A stretch of 64,000 nt of DNA from Oikopleura dioica (GCA_907165135.1 OU015566.1:9610001-9674000), one strand, 5' to 3'. Counted from the stretch's first letter, positions 26,142 through 37,734 are shown. Numbers and translations: made by a program. The notes: a model not told the origin generated them from the sequence alone.

Positions 26142-28109
26142 TCATGAGTTTGTAACATCTCTTCCATCATCTTCATTTGAGCAGCATTCGCAGGCTGCGA
26201 AATCGCAGCACATGCCACCAAAAACATAGCAAAAACCGATTGGTAAAATTCAGGGCTGGATATTTTGAAATCAGCAAAAATTTCAAATCAATTTTTGTGT
26301 GAAATCTCATTTCTATCTCAAAATTTTGCACCATCTCAACAAATCTCAAATTTCAATATTATTGCAACTTCCTCGTCATAATTTTTCCATTCTTGAGATT
26401 GCTGAGATCTCGAGATCTCAAATCTCAAAATTTTGCGAACCGCGCAAGGGCCGCGGACAAACGTCGCGGGCTTACAGCAAGACTTGTGATTGGTTCAGAT
26501 GGACCTGAAATGCTTGAGATCTCAGAATTTCAAATTTCATTTCATTGCAACGCGCGTATCCAACTCACGCAGTTTTCTGAAATGCTTGAGATCTCAGCAT
26601 TTCAAATATCATTTTTTTGCAAAATCGAAAATTGAGATCTCAGACACAAAAATTTCTGAGATTGCATTTTTGAAATGGATGAGATGATGATTCATGTTTT
26701 TTTCGGGGTTTGAGATTTTTGTTGATTTCAAAATATCCAGCCCTGGTAAAATTGCAATGAGGCAAGGCCAGCAACAGATCAGTCCCAATTGACTGCCACA
26801 ATACTCCTCGTTCACTTAATTTTTCTTATCAAAAGCAAACAACATCGACTCTTACTGTCGTTGGTCAATTTCTTTAATCCTGAGTAGAGTTGTTCCTGAG
26901 TCCAACCCAGAGTTCGAAATCCGAGAAAATATAGCTGCTACCTGCTACCACTTGCTTTCACCTTAGTTACAAATGTATTTTCATCACATTTTTTATGGAA
27001 AAATACATTCTAGAACAAAATTATTTAAAATGGTAGCAATGCTAGCAGGAGACGATTTGCTACAACTTGCTACCACCTCTGATGACATTGCTACCTGCTA
27101 CCATTTGCTACCAAAAGTGGTAGCAATGGTAGCATGCTACCATTTGCTACCAATTGCTACCATCGGATTTCGAACTCTGGTCCAACCTGTCTGAAGGAAG
27201 GCTTTTTGTGAGAATAAAAAGAAAAATACGTACGAGTTGAAGGACCATGATGTCCTCTTCTGAAAGTGGCATTGATTCAGTCCAGTCTGAAGAAACTCCG
27301 ACACAGTTGGTAGTTGTTGGATATTGGTACAATCGGTCGTCGTAATTATCATCATCGCCGCATGCATCCAGGCCTCCTAAGAGGGGACTTCCTAAGAGTA
27401 AGAGCTAGGTTTAGACCTGGGAGTCCCGAGGCTGGGACACAAATACAAACCAGGAAAGACGTCTTTGATCATTTTTGCAATCTCCACAGGTGTAATATAA
27501 TTAGGACTCAAACTCAAAGTATATAATGTTGGTCTGTTTGCATTCGGATTTTCGCGAATTCTTTGAAAGTATTCGAAAAGCATTTCTCTCCGGGTATTGA
27601 ATGAAGCATCTCTCGGAGCTCTTATCGGTTTTAATAATCGTCAATTCTATGGAACAAAAAGAAGAAGAAAAATTAAAACTGCATTCCCTAAAGTCGTCTT
27701 TGAAACTCTCGTAAGATAGCTCGTCACTGCTCACTGGCGCCGAGTCGTAGTTTGAAGTCGGCGATGCATTTCTAAGAGAAGTTTCGTGTTCTGCCGCATT
27801 ACTGTCTGTAAACACTGAGCCAGCTACAGGTCCATTTTCTACTGTATTGGTTGCTTCTGGTAAATTAGAATGAGCATTTTCTGTTGGCAAAACGGAGCCA
27901 GCTACGGGCGCATTATAAGCTGCATTGTTTGATGGCTCGAAACTGTAAGGATCATATTCAGTTGAAGCAGGAGGTTGAGGCATAGCATGGCTCTGAGGAA
28001 GTTCTGGGACGACTGGTTGAACTGGCTCGGAAGTAAGCCCTGGAAACTGATAATCCGACCATGGATTGTCGGTCGTTTGCCCAAATTTATCATCCCCAAA
28101 GAAACTCAT
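26142..28109 (-). CDS. Multi-exon protein with C-terminal Cys-rich TM segment; two exons interrupted by hAT MITEs
   Basis: Removing each MITE plus one TSD restores ..QTGWTQEQLYSGLKKLTND.. and ..CCWPCLIAILPIGFCYVFGGMCC..; the first motif matches the neighbouring paralog. Confidence 0.6.
26251..26745. mobile_element. hAT-type MITE (495 bp)
   Basis: TIR CAGGGCTGGATATTTTGAAATCA; perfect 8-bp TSD GTAAAATT; internal gagatctc repeats. Confidence 0.92.
26908..27179. mobile_element. hAT-type MITE (272 bp)
   Basis: 17-bp TIR CAGAGTTCGAAATCCGA; perfect 8-bp TSD GTCCAACC; internal tgctacc/ggtagca repeats. Confidence 0.92.
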
Positions 28110-28552
28110 AACTGAACCTTACATCTGCATTTCCTTATACAATCACGTTTATTCTAGAGAACTGTATCGACGTGGTTTTCTCCATGTTGTGGTAAGTGGA
28201 TCCAGCAGAATGAAGAAATTCGTCGCACCTGCTCAAAAATAATTTTCGCTGGCCCGAGCAGCTTTTTGAGCACTTGCTTTGCTAAATACGCCGATAATAT
28301 AAGCTTTTAAAAATCTAAAACAAGAGTGTTCCTTCTACGCGTTTGAAAGTCATCATCGTCGCTGCTCTTTTGATAAGGTGCGATAAAATAATTGAGTTCC
28401 TAATTTACCGAAAAGTGCAGTAATTGCCTAGGGGCGTTCCTTCTACTTTCCTGCTTGCAAAGCGAACCAACCTTGACATCATTTTGGTACAAACAGAAAA
28501 AGCCTTATCACATTCGTTCAATTTTTTATGTAGATGATCAATTTATTTGAGA

Positions 28553-29985
28553 ATGGAACTCAGAGAAACGTGTTTTGCATTTACATATTCGCATGGGTTG
28601 TTTATGGACAACTTGTCACGTTCGCGAAGGGCGAAGACGGAATCAATTACAGGCATGGATTTCAAAAATCTGAAAAAGACATCTTTTTGTATGGAAGAAA
28701 TAATGTTAAGAAATCTAAATAGTCCCGCGTTGCTTGTTATAATGGCCGAATTTATAAAGACGTTTGTTTGCCTCTTCATATATACCCGCGAGAAGACCCT
28801 TGATGCTCTCTTACAAAATGTTTTGCAAGAAAAGAAGCTGTTTCTTCTTTGTAAGTCCATCTTTTCTAGCGCTCGATTGGAACTTCATTAGATTCCATTC
28901 CTTCCGGAATGTATGCGCTGTACAACATTCTGTCCTTTTACTCGATTTCTTTGGCCGATCCAACCACTTACTTTGTGCTTTTACAATCAAGAAGCTTGGC
29001 AACAGGAATTATCTACCAAATTCTTTTCAAAAAGCAGCTAAGTTGTCTCCAGGAAAGGGTTGAAACGAATTTAGCGCTCTCCACGTTTGGGAATGTTTAT
29101 AAATTCTAAACAAGAGCTAACTTATTCAACTCGCTGACAGTGGCTCTCGCTGGTTACTCTTACTGTTGGAACATCGATGAAGCAGTTTTCCTTCTCATCA
29201 TTCAACTTTGTGTTCAACGAAGCGATTCCGCTGATTTTGATACAGATAGTTTGCGCTTGCTTTGCCGGCGTTTACAACGAGTACTTGCTAAAGGCCAGGA
29301 ATGCGGACTTTTGGGTTCAGGAAAGGATACGATCATCATTATTTACAAACATTTTTTAACTCGCTAAAAGAGCTCAAAAACTCCCGAAAGCTGTTTGCGC
29401 AAATTTTTTCTCCCTTTTGATGTCGAAACACCCCTCCCTGAGTTTTGCCAAGTAATCCAGCGACTGCTTAAATTTCATTGAATTTGTGAACATGATCGTT
29501 CGTATCTCAAACAAGAATATATTTTTCTACGTCAACTCGATCATCATCAACGGTTTCATTTTTATCATTCAAGGAAATGTCAACAAGACAATTTTGGCGA
29601 ATACTTTTAAATTGCCAGCTTTGATCATCCCTTTCAACCTGGCTTTGATTGGAATTACGACAGTCATGTTCTTGAAACACTTGAACTCCATTCTGAAAAC
29701 AATCGCAGCAGGAAACGGTCGAAACTCATTTTTTGCATCATTGCAACCAAGATATTCAACCGATCAAAAGCTTCTGAGCTCTTCTTTGCTGCATGCTTGT
29801 CCTACCTCTTCTTCGGCATCCCGATTGAGATGGGGACAATCGTCTCAGTTGTCATGATTTGGCTTTCGTTGTACATTTACGCGGTAAATCCCATCAAGCA
29901 ACCAGAAAAACAGACGAGTGAAGACGAAGTTATTGAAGAAAAACTAGACCTGTTGAAATCTGACAAAAACTCGAATCCAGTTTGA
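28553..29985 (+). CDS. SLC35A-family nucleotide-sugar transporter, multi-exon
   Basis: AEFIKT, YALYNILSFY, DPTTYFVLLQ..ATGIIY, FAGVYNEYLLK, LKHLNSILK; includes a GA-AG intron after ..FWVQ. Confidence 0.85.
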
Positions 29986-30412
29986 TTTTTCTTACTTAGA
30001 ATATTATAATCCTATAAAGCTGTAACCACCAAAAGCATTTTAATTCTCAAAAACACAAAACAAAAACTATTAATTCTTTATCCGTTTATTCTTTGTTCAG
30101 AGGTGTCTTGAAAATTCAGAGTAGAAAGAAAGACCTTACAAAACAAGAAGCTTCTATGTGTTTTCAACAACATATGCATCAAGGGTCATTTTCACGGCAC
30201 GAGCATTAACGGTATATAAAGTGTTTCCTGTCAGATGGAGCGCATATTGGGCCACTCAGTTTTTATGCGATTTAGATACGCTACTTTGTGGGCCGAGAAT
30301 TAAATATTTACGTCCAAAATCGAACCTAAGTCACTTTGTCGTATCAGATGGTCTATAAATGGCTCTTGATTTATTAATTTTACCCCCTTAAGTCGGAATT
30401 TCTTCTAAGTTA

Positions 30413-33080
30413 CTAAGCTTTTCTCCGCAAAAATGACCCCTGCGAACTGTAGTTCGGCGAAGTCTGGGTAGTTTGATCGACGAATTGTCTGTTTTCTGCG
30501 CTTGATTGCTTTCTGTTCTTGTCCTTGTCTTCTCGGAAAGCAACGTCAACTGCGATTTGAATCAGCCCACCCAGCCAGCTCAGTCCCATCAGCATCTATC
30601 AACGTCAACTTCATTAAATTGCTCCGACAGCTTACCCATAAAAGACAGACAATTCTGTAGAAAACCGATACGACACCCATCCAGAACTCGTTTGTACCTT
30701 AGAAGATCGTCTCATAAACTCTGTTGTATAAAAAAACTAACCGGGCAATTTCCAATTCTTTTGCGTTTGTCCTTCGAACTCAGCTGTCGGCGTCAGGTCT
30801 CCAAATCCAATCGTAGTCAGAGTAATGATCGTAAAATAGAACGCGTCCAAGAAATCCCAGCCCTCTATTTTTGAGAAGAAAAGCGCCGGCATTACCGAAA
30901 ATATCCTGAAACAGACTTTGAGTAGGAGTTTCTTAGAATCATCTCTACCCGAAACCGATGACAATGTAGAGCGATATCGCTGTTCTTTTCCCACGAAAAC
31001 GGTAGAAACCAGCGGACTTGACGAATTTGTGTAGATAGTTTCCAGTGACTTTCATCAAGTAATAAAAATATGGAACACCAAACAAGGCGTAGATCACGCA
31101 AAACATCTTGGAAAAAATAATTATCAATCGGACGAAATTCTGTGGAACGGACCTTGCCATATTTGGTCTTTGGCGCAACGTTGCCATATCCGATCGTGGT
31201 AATAACGGTGCCCACGAAGTAGAAAGCGTTTTTGAGAGAGAGGCGATTTTCTGGCAGTTAGACTTTCTGGCAGTTAGACTTTCTGGCAAAGGCGATTTTC
31301 TGGCACTGCCAGAAAATCTAATATGCCAGAAAATCTAATTTCCAGAAAATCGCCTCTTTTGATTTTGAATCTACAGTTAGTGATCCTGGAAGGTAAAAAA
31401 ACGGAGAGGGTTTTCGACAGTACCACCAATTTTTTCTTACATGTTTTATAAAAATTCATTGACAAAAGCCATTTTTGACCCATTTATTCAAGATAATTGG
31501 CTGTAGCAAACATAAATCAGCTTCTTCCGGGAATTTTCACCCGGTGTTATTTGCATCTGATTTCGAGTACTTGGTCACAGTGGGCACCCACTGAGATAAT
31601 GGCGCACGCTCATGCTTTTTAAAACTGAACTTGTTATAAAACTCTCCTGAAAATTCTTCCTCAGAAGGTGGTGGAATCGCTGTCATTTTCAATATTTATC
31701 TATACGATTTTTCTTCCTTATCATTCTCCATTTTCTCAAAAAAATCAAAATCTAACTTTTCAGCTGCCTGTGAACCCGTTTGTCACTCCGAAAACAGCTA
31801 GAACGAACTGCGGATGCTACCCTCATTCTATTTTTAGCGCAGAAATTTCAATTCCCAATTCGTAGTCTTTTTTTACCGCCCTGAATAGTCGGCTTTTAGA
31901 TCAAACGCTCCCGTCGAAAGGTGCAAACTCCTGCTGAAACTGCTCCGAAATGAAATTTGTGTGATAATCACCAGTTTTTCGAATTTATAAAATGATTATT
32001 ATTAAGAGTTTCTTGCAGAATTTCAAATAATATCCATCCTATAAAGGCGATTTCACCACCTGAGGAAGAATTTTCTGGAGAGCTTTATAACAAGTTCAGT
32101 TTTAAAAAGCATTAGCGTGCGCCATTATCTCAGTGGGTGCCCACTGTGACCAAGTACTCGAAATCAGATGCAAATAACACCTGGTGATTAACACAAAAAT
32201 TCCCGGAAGAAGCTGATTTATGTTTGCTACAGCCAATAATCTTGAATAAATGGGTCAAAAGTGGCTTTTGTCAATGAATTTAAAAAAAAAAAACATGTAA
32301 GAAAAAATTGGTGGTACTGTCGAAAACCCTCTCCGTTTTTTTACCTTCCAGGATCATTAACTGTAGATTCAAAATCAAAAGAGGCGATTTTCTGGCAGTT
32401 AGACTTTCTGGCAGTTAGACTTTCTGGCAAAGGCGATTTTCTGGAAGTTAGATTTTCTGGCAGTGCCAGAAAATCGCCTTTGCCAGAAAGTCTAACTGCC
32501 AGAAAATCTAACTGCCAGAAAATCGCCTCTCTCCGTTTTTGAACGTCCAGTTTTCTGGACAACCGTGTTCAAGAAGCGCTCCAGTATCGCTAAAAATATA
32601 AATGCGAGTACCGACGATTTGCTTACCGGGCGACAGTTGTAATGGAGTCAACAAGGAGAACATAATTGTCAGCTGACAAAGTCACATTCCAATCGACACC
32701 TTCTGGCTTAGTCTTTTTGAACTGGTTCCAAATCCAAACCTCCGTCCCTTTATCAATAAATAAAGTCTAAGATCTATTCTAATTTTAACTCTACTGCATG
32801 ATAGATCTGCCGAATACAAATTAAAAATGAAGCAGATTTTAAGTAGAAGCATAAATGCTTGCTTACCCGCCATATAGATATTGCTTATGTTTTGTGCAGC
32901 TTCACAGAGCGCGATTTCATTCGGGCGCTCAGTCTTAATAAATTATTGTCTGAATGAACTTGCATTTGAAAATGCGAACAAACCATTAAGAAAATCGCTG
33001 CCCCAAAAGCCAGGTACAGAAAATAGACGGCGATTCGACCACAGTAGCCGTACGCATCCGGCAAGTGACAGCCCTATATA
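30413..33080 (-). CDS. Two-pore-domain K+ channel (K2P) 1; P1 exon interrupted by a foldback element
   Basis: [63 protein letters not shown]; 5' exon(s) unresolved. Confidence 0.9.
31236..32533. mobile_element. Foldback/MULE-like non-autonomous element (1298 bp)
   Basis: About 445-bp inverted arms starting GAGAGAGGCGATTTTCTGG, with 16-nt tandem/palindromic subrepeats; perfect 9-bp TSD CGTTTTTGA (31227-31235, 32534-32542). Confidence 0.95.
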
Positions 33081-34682
33081 ACAAATTAGGGATAACACCC
33101 AACTACCAAAATATGGTTGAATTACCTTTTTCTTCTCCTTTTGCCCTTCGGAAATTTGCAGCGGAATCTGTTGTTTTTGATAATAACTTTCAAGGTTCGA
33201 TACCAGTTAGATTTTAGAGCTCATTAATGAAATACTGTGAACGAATATGTATTTTCCTTGCCTGTTTTGTGAAATTTGCGCAGTGAAGTCAGGTTTTTCT
33301 GCTCTTTTCTCTTGGCGAGGGCTTTCGCCGGGCGATGCTTCCGAAACTCCATCTGTTGGATTCTGTTGGAAAAGAAACAGCACTTTTTCGCCTTCAATAG
33401 AATACTTATCTCGGAAATATTCGTATAAAGAATTTTGAAGGGTTCCTGTCATATTGGCAGAAGCAAGCGCAACTTTCAGAAAAGTCTCATTTTTATTCTC
33501 GTCATTTTTGTTTGTCTTCGTCATTTTGGATCTTCGCGAGTTGATTTCAGTCTCATTCTCTGGCTTAGTTGTATATGCACGTAAAGAACGAAAAGGAGAA
33601 AATATAAAAATAAACTGGAAAGCATCGAACAGGCGGACGAGCGTGCGGGCGACATCCGCTGTCAGCACAGTCAAGCAGGTACTGCAGCCGAGATTCAGAG
33701 ATTGCCAATACGCCCCATCACCCGCAAAATTCAATCAAGAGGGGTATCTATTCCAAATAACGGCTAATAAGTATAAGCTGTTGAAGCGCTTTTAGTGAGA
33801 TAAGACTGTTGTACCAATTACTTAACAAAAACTCTATCGTCAGATGTAAATCATTCTATTCGCAAAACCTTGGATAGATTATCAAAAGAATAATCTTCTG
33901 AAGATTTGATTGATTGAATCAATAACAGTCATAAGAATTCACTTTGATAGATTTATCATTGAGATTCAATACTTATTCGTTTTGAAAACTCATCGTTTTA
34001 ATTTGTCCGATATCAACCTTCGGAAAATTCAACATTTAAAAGACATATTCCGATATTCTGACAGGAACAGTTTGTCGATTTACCTTTCACCGCCTTGAGG
34101 TCATTAAAGTTTCTGATCCCAGCAGGAGGTCAAGAAGCAAAAAGTGTCGTTTTATACGTCACGCTGTCATTTTCAAGGACGTTGATATAAAAATTTTACT
34201 CATTAATTCCTTGATCAAACATTGATATTCCGATGATACATACAAAGTGCCGTAGTCGCAGACTTTTGAGAGGATGACTTGTACTTTGGATACTTTATTA
34301 TAAATGCAAATGCTAGAATTCTAGTTCGACTCTTTAATTTTGGGCAATAACGATTGCAGAATCGACTGAACAATGATGCCGTCACTGATGAGCTACATTT
34401 TGCAATATTGAATTATTCAGCGTCAATGATAGGAAAGCTGTCTGATGTGGTGCATGAGTACGTTCTGTCATCCTAAGAGTATGCTTGAGCGGATCGTTAG
34501 GCACAACGAAAACTGAGCAGTGGTGCGAACGTCGCGTTGCTGATTTAGAATCACGCGCCGATCATACAATTGTCAATTGTAATACGTCTTGTAAAACGTT
34601 TGTTTATTACAGAATTAGATCAAGAACATGACTGTCAAAGTATTTAAGAAGTTAAAAGATTGCCGTAAAGTTGAATTAGAAA

Positions 34683-36885
34683 TTACTTTTTCCCTTTTTT
34701 CTGACCTTTAGTAGCGGCTTCAAGGACATAAATAAATTTCTTCTCAATATTGAAGTCTTTTGTTAGAACTTTTTCGATGTGTTTTGCTTGGTTTCCTTGA
34801 ATTTGCACTTGTATCAGTTTTCCGCTCACATCTGTTCCGATACTTGCCGATGCCTATTAAAAATATTGAGCCGAGAAGGATAGTTATGTCTCTACCTGGG
34901 CGAGCTTTTTCATCTTGTCAGCGAACAATTGCGGATCAAGAAAGAACGATTCAAATCCAGTGATCATCGATACCATTTTATTGCCTGAGACCTTCTTTGT
35001 CGTCAAATCGATGCGGGGCATCTTCCCCTTCTTGACCGCTGCAGTTGGCTGTCCAGGAAACTTGACAGAGTAGGCTGGACCCATTTTTGATTGAACACCT
35101 CCAAAAACTTTGTCCCAGGAGGCCGTTTCTTTATCTGCACCGCCTTTTCCGAAAACCGCTTGATGAAGAACAGGGTCCATTTTTACATCCTTCTTTCCTC
35201 GTAAATCATTTGCTTCGATATACTGAAATCTTATATTGATGGTGATTTGAAGAATGATTCAATACCATTGTTACGAATTTTCGAATATCCTGAAGATTGA
35301 GAACTGCACCACGCCTGCAACCAACACTCGTGAATAAGTTTTCGACCTGACCAGAGACGACATAAAGCTGGGTAACCGCCGGAGCAGAGTAATCCTCTTT
35401 TGTAGACGAAGAACCTTAAACAACCATTATCATTCTTTCATGATAGTCTGCGCGTTTTTCACGCTTCCGTGCACCATTGACTTCATTTTGTGTTATTCTT
35501 GTGCATTATCTGGCAGGCCAGTGGCAGCCGATTTCTGGCATGCTCTATTTTCTTACCCAAAATGTTAACCATCGGCTTGGCAGCTTCTTCAGTAGGCTCG
35601 TCTGCTTCCACCGACTCTTGCCATCCACGGAAGTACGAGTGCTTGAAATCAACGGAAGAAATCTGATCAACGCCGCTGCTAACTTGTCCGATTTTCAAAA
35701 TGCCATCTTTTTCTTTCGCAGAAAAGAAGGTGGAAAGCTTCTTGAAAGAAGTTTTCTTTATTTTGAGTTCTTTTCCGTTTGGTACTGATGGGAGAAGATA
35801 TTGAGAGAAGAATGTCGAACAGAGAAGAGGTAGAGCTCCCTAAACATAATTTTCGATAGTAAAACAAGATAGATTACTACCTTATCCTCCTGAAGCTTTG
35901 CCTTGACGGCGATTTTAAAAGAATTTTCTAACAGAGAATCTTGTTCATTTCGCATTTCTTCCAGACTCTTTTCTGGAGCCTCTTCGTCTGCCTCTGTAGT
36001 TACGGCTTCACTACTGTTTTCCTCGACTTTGCAATCAGGAGATTCTTCAGTTTCAGCTTCATTATCAGCGGTTCTCTCGGTGGATTCGTCGTCAATGTCT
36101 ATTTTAGGGGTCATTTTTGTAATCTTTGGAGCAAATTTCGGATATTTTGCTAAATTTAAAAGATGAAGTTTTTGTTTAAAGTGAGTCCCAATCATTGATA
36201 TCCAAATTTTCGATATCTTCTTGCGTCAGCGTTCTATATGAACATTGTCAAAGAAATTCTTGTAGAATTTTCCCAAGTGGAAAGAAGTGAGGCACCTGAA
36301 CTGCGGATCTGTCTCAGTGGGTGGGATCTTCTTGCTCCCACTCGCCCAGAGCTGATCGCCAACGCACGAGACAATCTTCACGGCTTTGCCGCTCAAGCCC
36401 TTCGAAAGCTGCTCTGTGGATTGCTCCGCTACTCCTATCGCGACGAAGTGCTTTTGCCCGGCGATTTTGATGCAAACGGCTTTGTTCCGTTCAATTTTCT
36501 CGTGCACCCCGACCCCAGGAGAAAGAATTATTCCCGGTGCCATCAAATCGGCTCCGTTGGCGAATCGTTCGAGGACATTTCCAGTCGTATGGAGCGTCGG
36601 AACACCCAGAAATTCATAGCTCCAGAGCGAGTAGAGATAAGGAATCAATGTCCCGTTTTTCATCTCGATCACTGTTGGTTCCCCTTCCACGGTAAATACA
36701 GTTACTGGCTCTCCTTTATGCGTAACCACCTTCATTTCTTTCAAATCGCCCTTCGCCGGCACCATGGAATTGAGCGTCTCTTCCGGAGTTTCGGGAAAGA
36801 AATAGGCAAAGCGACTTTTCAACTTTCGCCGATCGGAATTACGGACAGTTACTGCGCTTTTGCTGCGAAACGGCTTTACGAACAT
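34683..36885 (-). CDS. EIF2D: Eukaryotic translation initiation factor 2D (ligatin)
   Basis: MFVKPFRSKS..RNSDRRKL, PUA domain (NGADLMAPG), C-terminal SUI1-like KKVSGNKMVSMITG..QIQGNQ. Confidence 0.9.
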
Positions 36886-37088: not shown

Positions 37089-37382
37089 TTACTTCTGGAC
37101 CTTCTTGGCGGTGACGCCTTCTCTGAATCCGTTATGGAATCGTCGGTTCACGTCCTTGAGGTGCTTTGCTCGGCCAGTTCCGGGGGCAGTTCGGCGCTTG
37201 GCCTTGGTCGACCAGTTGAATCGGCCTCGCTAGAATGGAAAATGAAAATGAGAAAAGAAAGGATGAATAATAACTCGAGAGTCTCGCTTCTTCTGAAGAT
37301 GGTAGGCTCGTCGACCGGTGATTCGGGAGATGATATGGGTCTTATCATTGCGAGTACCGCGAGATGTCGTTCCCTTGGTCAT
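37089..37382 (-). CDS. RPL37: 60S ribosomal protein L37 (eL37), 82 aa, lacking zinc-finger cysteines
   Basis: MTKGTTS..KTH..AYHLQK and [26 protein letters not shown]; GT-AG intron 37274-37230. Confidence 0.9.
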
Positions 37383-37734
37383 TTTCTAGTCGATTTCTGA
37401 ACAAAACCAGATTTATTGGTCGTCTGCGATGACGATTTTCGGAAAGGTATCCAGTAGGGAAAAGTCAAGTTTAGAGAGGATATACCACAAAAACTAGTCA
37501 ATACTCGCCAATCTCCTCACAACTTTACTTTAAATACGGTAGAAATATAATATCTCTGAAAACAAAGAAGTTTGAAGAGGTCCATCCACAAATAATAGGG
37601 TAAAAGCAAAGGGAATAGGTTCTCCACGAAAGTCTTCTTTATAATCTCTGAATAACATTCATCTTCTGACAAAAGAGGGGAAAACGGAAAGAATGTTGGA
37701 AAGAACGCGCGTGCTGCGTAAAATAACGGCGCTG

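Follow-up and report, generated by a model that had tools for sequence, protein, structure and literature searches.

A polymorphic foldback transposon interrupts the first pore exon of a TREK-like K2P channel gene

The locus described here raises a simple question: does a 1298-bp foldback element lying in the middle of a channel exon break the gene, or could its transcript be repaired by splicing the element out in frame? The element was found in a 64,000-nt stretch of DNA, analysed here as a whole and referred to as the window, where it divides the P1 exon of a K2P gene between the residues NWTFKN and AFYF. A preliminary description of the locus had proposed that the two ends of the element carry a GA donor and a branch-point-like motif with an acceptor, and that they would allow whole-codon splicing at any insertion site. 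The anatomy behind this proposal is largely as described. The indirect evidence nevertheless points to an ordinary gene-breaking insertion, as set out below.

The host is a genuine TREK-like K2P gene that is otherwise intact. Counted from the exon for M1 up to the stop (30415-30413), it comprises eight exons on the minus strand (30413..33073), and after removal of the element and one copy of its target-site duplication (TSD) the reading frame is open over 324 codons. Its seven introns, of 37-119 nt, are all GT-AG. Two T-x-G-[YF]-G filters, TIGYG and TIGFG, are found in one chain with four transmembrane helices (M1-M4); Pfam Ion_trans_2 hits fall on the exons for M2 and P2, and the best solved matches of the gene are TREK-2, TREK-1 and TRAAK (K2P10/2/4), with E-values down to 7.5e-13. 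The P1 segment is nearest to the solved TREK-2, TREK-1, TASK and TRAAK channels. The interrupted exon, which encodes pore helix 1 and the selectivity filter, spans 31153..32589 on the minus strand and measures 130 nt in the empty allele, as judged from the alignments and the reconstructed ORF. On the gene strand the sequence runs ...AAC TGG ACG TTC AAA AAC G, then through the element (32533 down to 31236), and resumes with TC AAA AAC GCT TTC TAC.... By our reading, the insertion point between W-T-F-K-N and A-F-Y-F falls at the N terminus of pore helix 1. All 43 solved K2P/TOK sequences that were matched align to the segment around it without a gap, and so do their second pore domains in those alignments that were displayed.

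Could this K2P copy be a decaying pseudogene, in which the insertion would be neutral? The start codon and the first intron or 5' exon have no unambiguous placement from sequence, as such decay would allow. We hold this reading to be very improbable, since the frame is open over 324 codons, none of the seven introns has lost its GT-AG ends and the two filter motifs are retained; moreover, unbroken gene fragments from metagenomes keep the same residues, and the empty allele on one marine contig (L003, below) is open across the site. As a separate observation on the 5' part of the gene, a possible intron of 111 nt lies at 33145-33256 on the minus strand (AAG/GAAAATA...CCGAAG/GGC, slashes marking the splice points here and below). 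Its removal would eliminate a TAA in the reading frame and connect the M1 region to a 175-codon ORF upstream (33207-33734). If real, it would belong to the GA-AG class, its donor having the AG/GAA context described in the literature, but many donor/acceptor pairs fit equally well and the assignment is ambiguous.

The element itself occupies 31236..32533, is given no strand, and is present as a single copy in the 64-kb window. It is bordered by a perfect 9-bp direct repeat, the TSD, with copy 1 at 31227..31235 (CGTTTTTGA, or TCAAAAACG on the gene strand) and copy 2 at 32534..32542. The foldback and the split exon of the preliminary description are confirmed. Two inverted arms, left at 31236..31670 and right at 32054..32533, enclose a non-coding central loop of 383 nt (31671..32053), delimited by the spacing between the arms and by an ORF scan. 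In a self-comparison, arms of ~435 nt were 95-99% complementary, with the inverted repeats arranged as four collinear blocks of 86, 124, 94 and 134 nt; the right arm has about two extra repeat units. The outer ~120 nt of the left arm consist of 16-17-nt repeats and form a nested palindrome, the terminal ~165 nt of the right arm fold on themselves, and at each end of the element the outer ~165 nt are also palindromic on their own. The repeat unit, CCAGAAA[AG]TC plus GCCT/TAAC/TAAT (16-17 nt), occurs in 16 copies, in both orientations, within the element termini and is absent elsewhere in the 64-kb window; likewise, a 20-mer from the terminal inverted repeats (TIRs) has 7 matches in the window, all within the element, where 0 were expected. 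On the gene strand the element begins GAGAGAGG and finishes ...CTAACTGCCAG plus a 15-nt tail; compared as inverted repeats, its two ends agree at every one of their outermost 27 nt. The ORF scan found no coding ORF in the element, which is therefore non-autonomous.

Judged from its structure, the element is a recent cut-and-paste insertion of a non-autonomous DNA transposon of Mutator/Foldback type. The GAGA at its start resembles the termini of maize Mu. The 9-bp TSD falls in the 8-10 bp range of this group, with one copy at the empty sites; the TIRs are long and composite, with short tandem subrepeats; and both presence/absence polymorphism and several copies, as transposition implies, were observed. 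The 16-17-nt terminal units are probably binding sites for a transposase. Elements of the Tm1 type within Mutator/Foldback have 9-bp TSDs and composite TIRs made of 13-15-bp repeats (PMC3169594). Tm1 of Meloidogyne and FB of Drosophila (Phantom-related) share with our element the 9-bp TSD and the long composite inverted repeats, as well as short tandem units (13-17 bp), non-autonomous forms of ~1 kb and internal-deletion variants (PMC3169594). The Tm1 motifs, in contrast, are unrelated to the terminal sequence of our element, GAGAGAGGCG..., and the likeness is a structural one, as no transposase or autonomous partner was seen with the element.

The size of the family can be gauged from a DNA run, X30, in which the contigs covering the element have a summed depth ~6-25 times as high as the flanks, suggesting a family of roughly ten copies. 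Joints in the same run within 31979-32382 and 31996-32043 represent internal-deletion derivatives that skip 402 and 46 nt; they are consistent with a heterogeneous foldback family, possibly still active. Searches for relatives further afield gave little. The TIR 20-mer had two matches among metagenome contigs, which we attribute to chance since blastn found no wider similarity, and none in a scan of viral contigs, and a protein search for further copies with an element-encoded pseudo-ORF returned no candidates.

The insertion is polymorphic, and the empty allele exists in other individuals and in environmental samples. In X30, a DNA contig (depth 97, side 96) joins 31226 to 32534 with nine shared bases, a precise empty site. 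A second empty site was found on L003, an ENA marine metagenome contig with 98.2% identity to 33097-32534 and 93.8% to 31235-30931, where the two matches overlap by 9 bp and TCAAAAACG occurs only once. The ORF on this contig (P0019), found by a protein search with the downstream half-exon, reads ...ENWTFKNAFYF... unbroken, and all 11 metagenome gene fragments recovered (P0019-P0029) are uninterrupted at WTF[KR]NAFYF, the ten other than P0019 presumably deriving from related species. Given the empty sites in X30 and L003 and these unbroken fragments, the empty state is ancestral. Two other explanations were considered and set aside: an assembly artefact is ruled out by a TSD free of mismatches and by two empty sites that were found independently, and an origin of the empty sites by excision is ruled out by the lack of any footprint in either and by the uninterrupted related fragments. 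An exact look-up of ORFs across the filled-allele junctions found none in the collection searched, and it thus yielded no second record of the filled allele.

Does the transcript of the filled allele have a route around the element? The details of the preliminary proposal bear directly on this. On the gene strand the first two bases of the element are indeed GA (32533-32532), giving a candidate donor ACG/GAGAGA at 32532..32533 (minus strand), and CTAAC and CAG are present 15 nt before the terminus, where a candidate acceptor AG (31251..31252, minus strand; ..CTAACTGCCAG/AAAATC..) lies within the terminal copy of the 16-nt repeat. The 15-nt tail is free of stops in every frame and, with the 9-bp TSD, amounts to 24 nt, so that a GA32533-AG31251 splice made in silico adds the eight residues ENRLSLKN without a stop. 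As had been argued, this arithmetic does not depend on orientation, because the outer 27 nt of both ends are the same. The GA-AG pair is one of 13 in-frame, stop-free donor/acceptor pairs near the element ends. A canonical GT donor, GCA/GTTAGA, lies 21 nt inside the element (32511..32512, minus strand) and is absent from the preliminary description; GT 32512 to AG 31251 gives +45 nt (15 aa), in frame and stop-free, and would do so in either orientation because of the TIR symmetry, the 21-nt 5' remnant having no stop in any frame. An exonic GT at 32563 joined to AG 31251 gives a net change of -6 nt, again in frame.

The element might thus behave as an intron that leaves a scar, with its GA donor and CAG acceptor adding 24 nt at any insertion and in either orientation, and yielding here a channel with ENRLSLKN. 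Beyond the arithmetic, the stop-free 15-mer and the identical outer TIRs, several features speak for such behaviour. ACG/GAGAGA agrees with the U1 consensus at five positions (-1, +1, +3 as a purine, +4 and +5), and the C at -2 is frequent in the GT introns of the K2P gene itself; the duplicated KN would retain ..LKN-AFYF beside the pore helix; and GA-AG is the main non-canonical intron class in Oikopleura dioica and in Eurytemora affinis (PMC7072748; PMC4122922). Among introners, those of Aureococcus carry both splice sites inside and add 12 nt, made up of 4 nt of element and 8 nt of TSD, and some families use GA donors in up to 40% of cases (Gozashti et al. 2022, PMC9860276). The geometry proposed for our element is alike in that retained bases and TSD sum to a multiple of three and codons are added; the Aureococcus introners, in contrast, are short, numerous and found as annotated introns, whereas our element, 1.3 kb long and present in about ten copies, folds into a giant hairpin, and its splicing is in silico only.

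Several lines of evidence nevertheless weigh against removal as a scar-leaving intron. Frame-preserving splice sites do exist in the element and its TSD in silico, but they lie in predicted double-stranded RNA: the interrupted exon with the whole foldback is predicted to fold at -862 kcal/mol, and the terminal hairpin (first 165 nt) at -142 kcal/mol. In this model, the sites within the element are buried in a near-perfect duplex, with a predicted unpaired probability of 0.0004 for the GT donor, ~0.001 or less for the acceptor with its CTAAC, which sit in a perfect stem, and 0.23 for the GA donor window. The candidate branch A of the last CTAAC is only 8 nt from the CAG, and the previous CTAAC would face two earlier AGs, both out of frame. 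The acceptor motif is itself a generic one: CAG and CTAAC belong to one copy among the 16 terminal repeats, and four sense-strand CAGs follow each other at 16-nt spacing at the acceptor end. Any one donor/acceptor pair has about a 1 in 4 chance of being in frame and stop-free, and the route is not unique, being 1 of the 13, which include the canonical GT 32512. The added residues would land in the pore segment that is ungapped in all 43 K2P/TOK sequences, the family numbers about ten copies rather than hundreds, and the insertion is still polymorphic.

The preliminary description had also appealed to GA donors elsewhere in the window, and these could not be confirmed. All 13 introns mapped there (seven in the K2P gene, five in a proteasome beta gene and one in an eL37 gene) are GT-AG, the one further candidate being the ambiguous AAG/GAAAAT at 33256. 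An ORF-continuity heuristic for GA-AG introns in the window proved non-discriminating, the 'good' fraction being similar for GT, GA, GC and GG. In view of this balance we regard scar-leaving intron behaviour as improbable for this element, and would give the GA32533-AG31251 splice a similarly slim prospect of being the main product. The broader notion of an animal 'scarred introner' family supposes that each terminus offers a working 5' splice site, GA at +1 or else GT at +22, and, when reversed, a 3' site at -16, to which the obligate 9-bp TSD is added. Splicing would then remove the element from every coding exon it enters, whatever the orientation or phase, and leave a scar of 24 or 45 nt that is in frame and free of stops; a large hairpin transposon could in this way persist within exons. 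We consider this, too, improbable.

Somewhat better placed, albeit still unlikely, is the removal of the element by other cryptic splices, by way of GT 32512 (+45 nt) or GT 32563 (-6 nt), which would produce some mRNAs with partial function alongside others with none. Imprecise splicing at sites near the ends of DNA transposons in exons is well established, as with Tc1 in C. elegans and Ds, dSpm and Mu in maize; it is said to have been described by Rushforth and Anderson in 1996 and by Wessler in 1989. In these elements, cryptic sites near the ends lead to leaky, sometimes in-frame mRNAs, in which they resemble our element; their splicing is experimentally documented, whereas that of our element is an in-silico possibility. 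The 13 in-frame, stop-free routes argue for such an outcome, as do the likeness of GTTAGA at 32512 to the donor of K2P intron 6, GTTAGT, and the 21-nt remnant that is open in all frames. Against it, the GT donor is predicted to be as deeply buried as the acceptor, and GT 32512 has an A at -1.

We therefore favour, with somewhat better than even confidence, the reading of the filled allele as a segregating null or hypomorphic K2P allele, its probable loss of function following from two properties of the interrupted exon: read-through stops eight codons into the element, and skipping of the exon shifts the frame. In the sequence of events that we envision, a Mutator/Foldback-type element inserted recently into the P1 exon of the TREK-like channel, where it is still polymorphic. 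Unspliced read-through would meet a stop after 8 element-encoded codons (in the ORF scan, the read-through ORF 32508-32663 terminates inside the element), and skipping of the 130-nt exon would cause a frameshift. By the model, the pre-mRNA should form a hairpin of exceptional size, in which every splice site in the element would be buried. Cryptic splicing near the ends may yield a minor, leaky in-frame product (+24, +45 or -6 nt, all to AG 31251); such a product would simply follow from the way the repeats are arranged and from the 9-bp TSD, with no selected design behind it, as in-frame footprints or scars are a generic outcome of a TSD of this length. A counterpoint to a null allele is that the genome, if Oikopleura-like, would have a reportedly permissive spliceosome (PMC4122922; PMC7072748).

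A further comparison is offered by Fritillaria borealis, whose MITE-derived non-canonical introns are reported to be fixed, to occur in very large numbers and to be cut out precisely at AG-AC/AG-AT ends (Henriet et al. 2019, via PMC11282704). Both cases concern a planktonic animal that has TIR/TSD elements within coding exons and whose spliceosome accepts donors other than GT. They differ in that the ordinary introns of our gene are GT-AG, the element is polymorphic and its removal would leave a scar.

Read as a segregating loss-of-function allele, the locus presents a natural insertion polymorphism in which an active Mutator/Foldback-type element disrupts the gene for an ion channel in an animal of the marine plankton. 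Both alleles can be recovered from public data, and the insertion is a marker of current transposon activity; as such it is not surprising. Were in-frame removal to be true instead, the locus would show the birth of an intron in an animal at a stage when it still segregates, and the mechanism by which element and TSD together add whole codons, so far a matter of short algal introners, would extend to a kilobase-scale foldback.

RNA data under the same species label were also considered. The runs X4-X6, mapped on 26720-32709, gave no reads on any gene in these 6 kb apart from a 34-nt chance match, and are therefore uninformative on splicing of the filled allele; no word of the locus is found in older RNA contig sets. 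Under this label, runs X25-X30 contain the locus, while X32-X48 (DNA) and X4-X6 (RNA) share essentially no sequence with it. The RNA runs probably stem from a different lineage carrying the same name, and the pattern suggests that the species label covers deeply diverged lineages. The organism of the window is probably a larvacean similar to Oikopleura, to judge from introns of about 45 nt, the matches in marine metagenomes, runs under one label without any 31-mer in common, and an assembly made up of a few very large pieces.

Other features of the window deserve brief mention. A search of positions 1-64000 against Rfam gave no family at the gathering score, and no matches to tRNA, snRNA, snoRNA or SL RNA. 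A second transposon-like element, a 272-bp hAT-like MITE at 26908-27179 (region 26900-27187) with TIR CAGAGTTCGAAATCCGA and a perfect 8-bp TSD GTCCAACC, sits inside an apparent minus-strand coding exon; X30 contigs include variant copies of it, and a right-junction contig ends exactly at the TSD, no clear empty-site joint being listed among these contigs. The eL37 gene (37092-37385, minus strand) has one GT-AG intron and encodes a product without the usual zinc-binding cysteines. At 36229-36885 on the minus strand lies a single-exon MCTS1-like gene with Pre-PUA and PUA domains. A 98%-identical ORF was found on marine metagenome and Logan contigs (L004, L005), with DNA identity of ~97% over 1.3-2.2 kb; ocean metagenomes sample the organism of the window or a very close relative.
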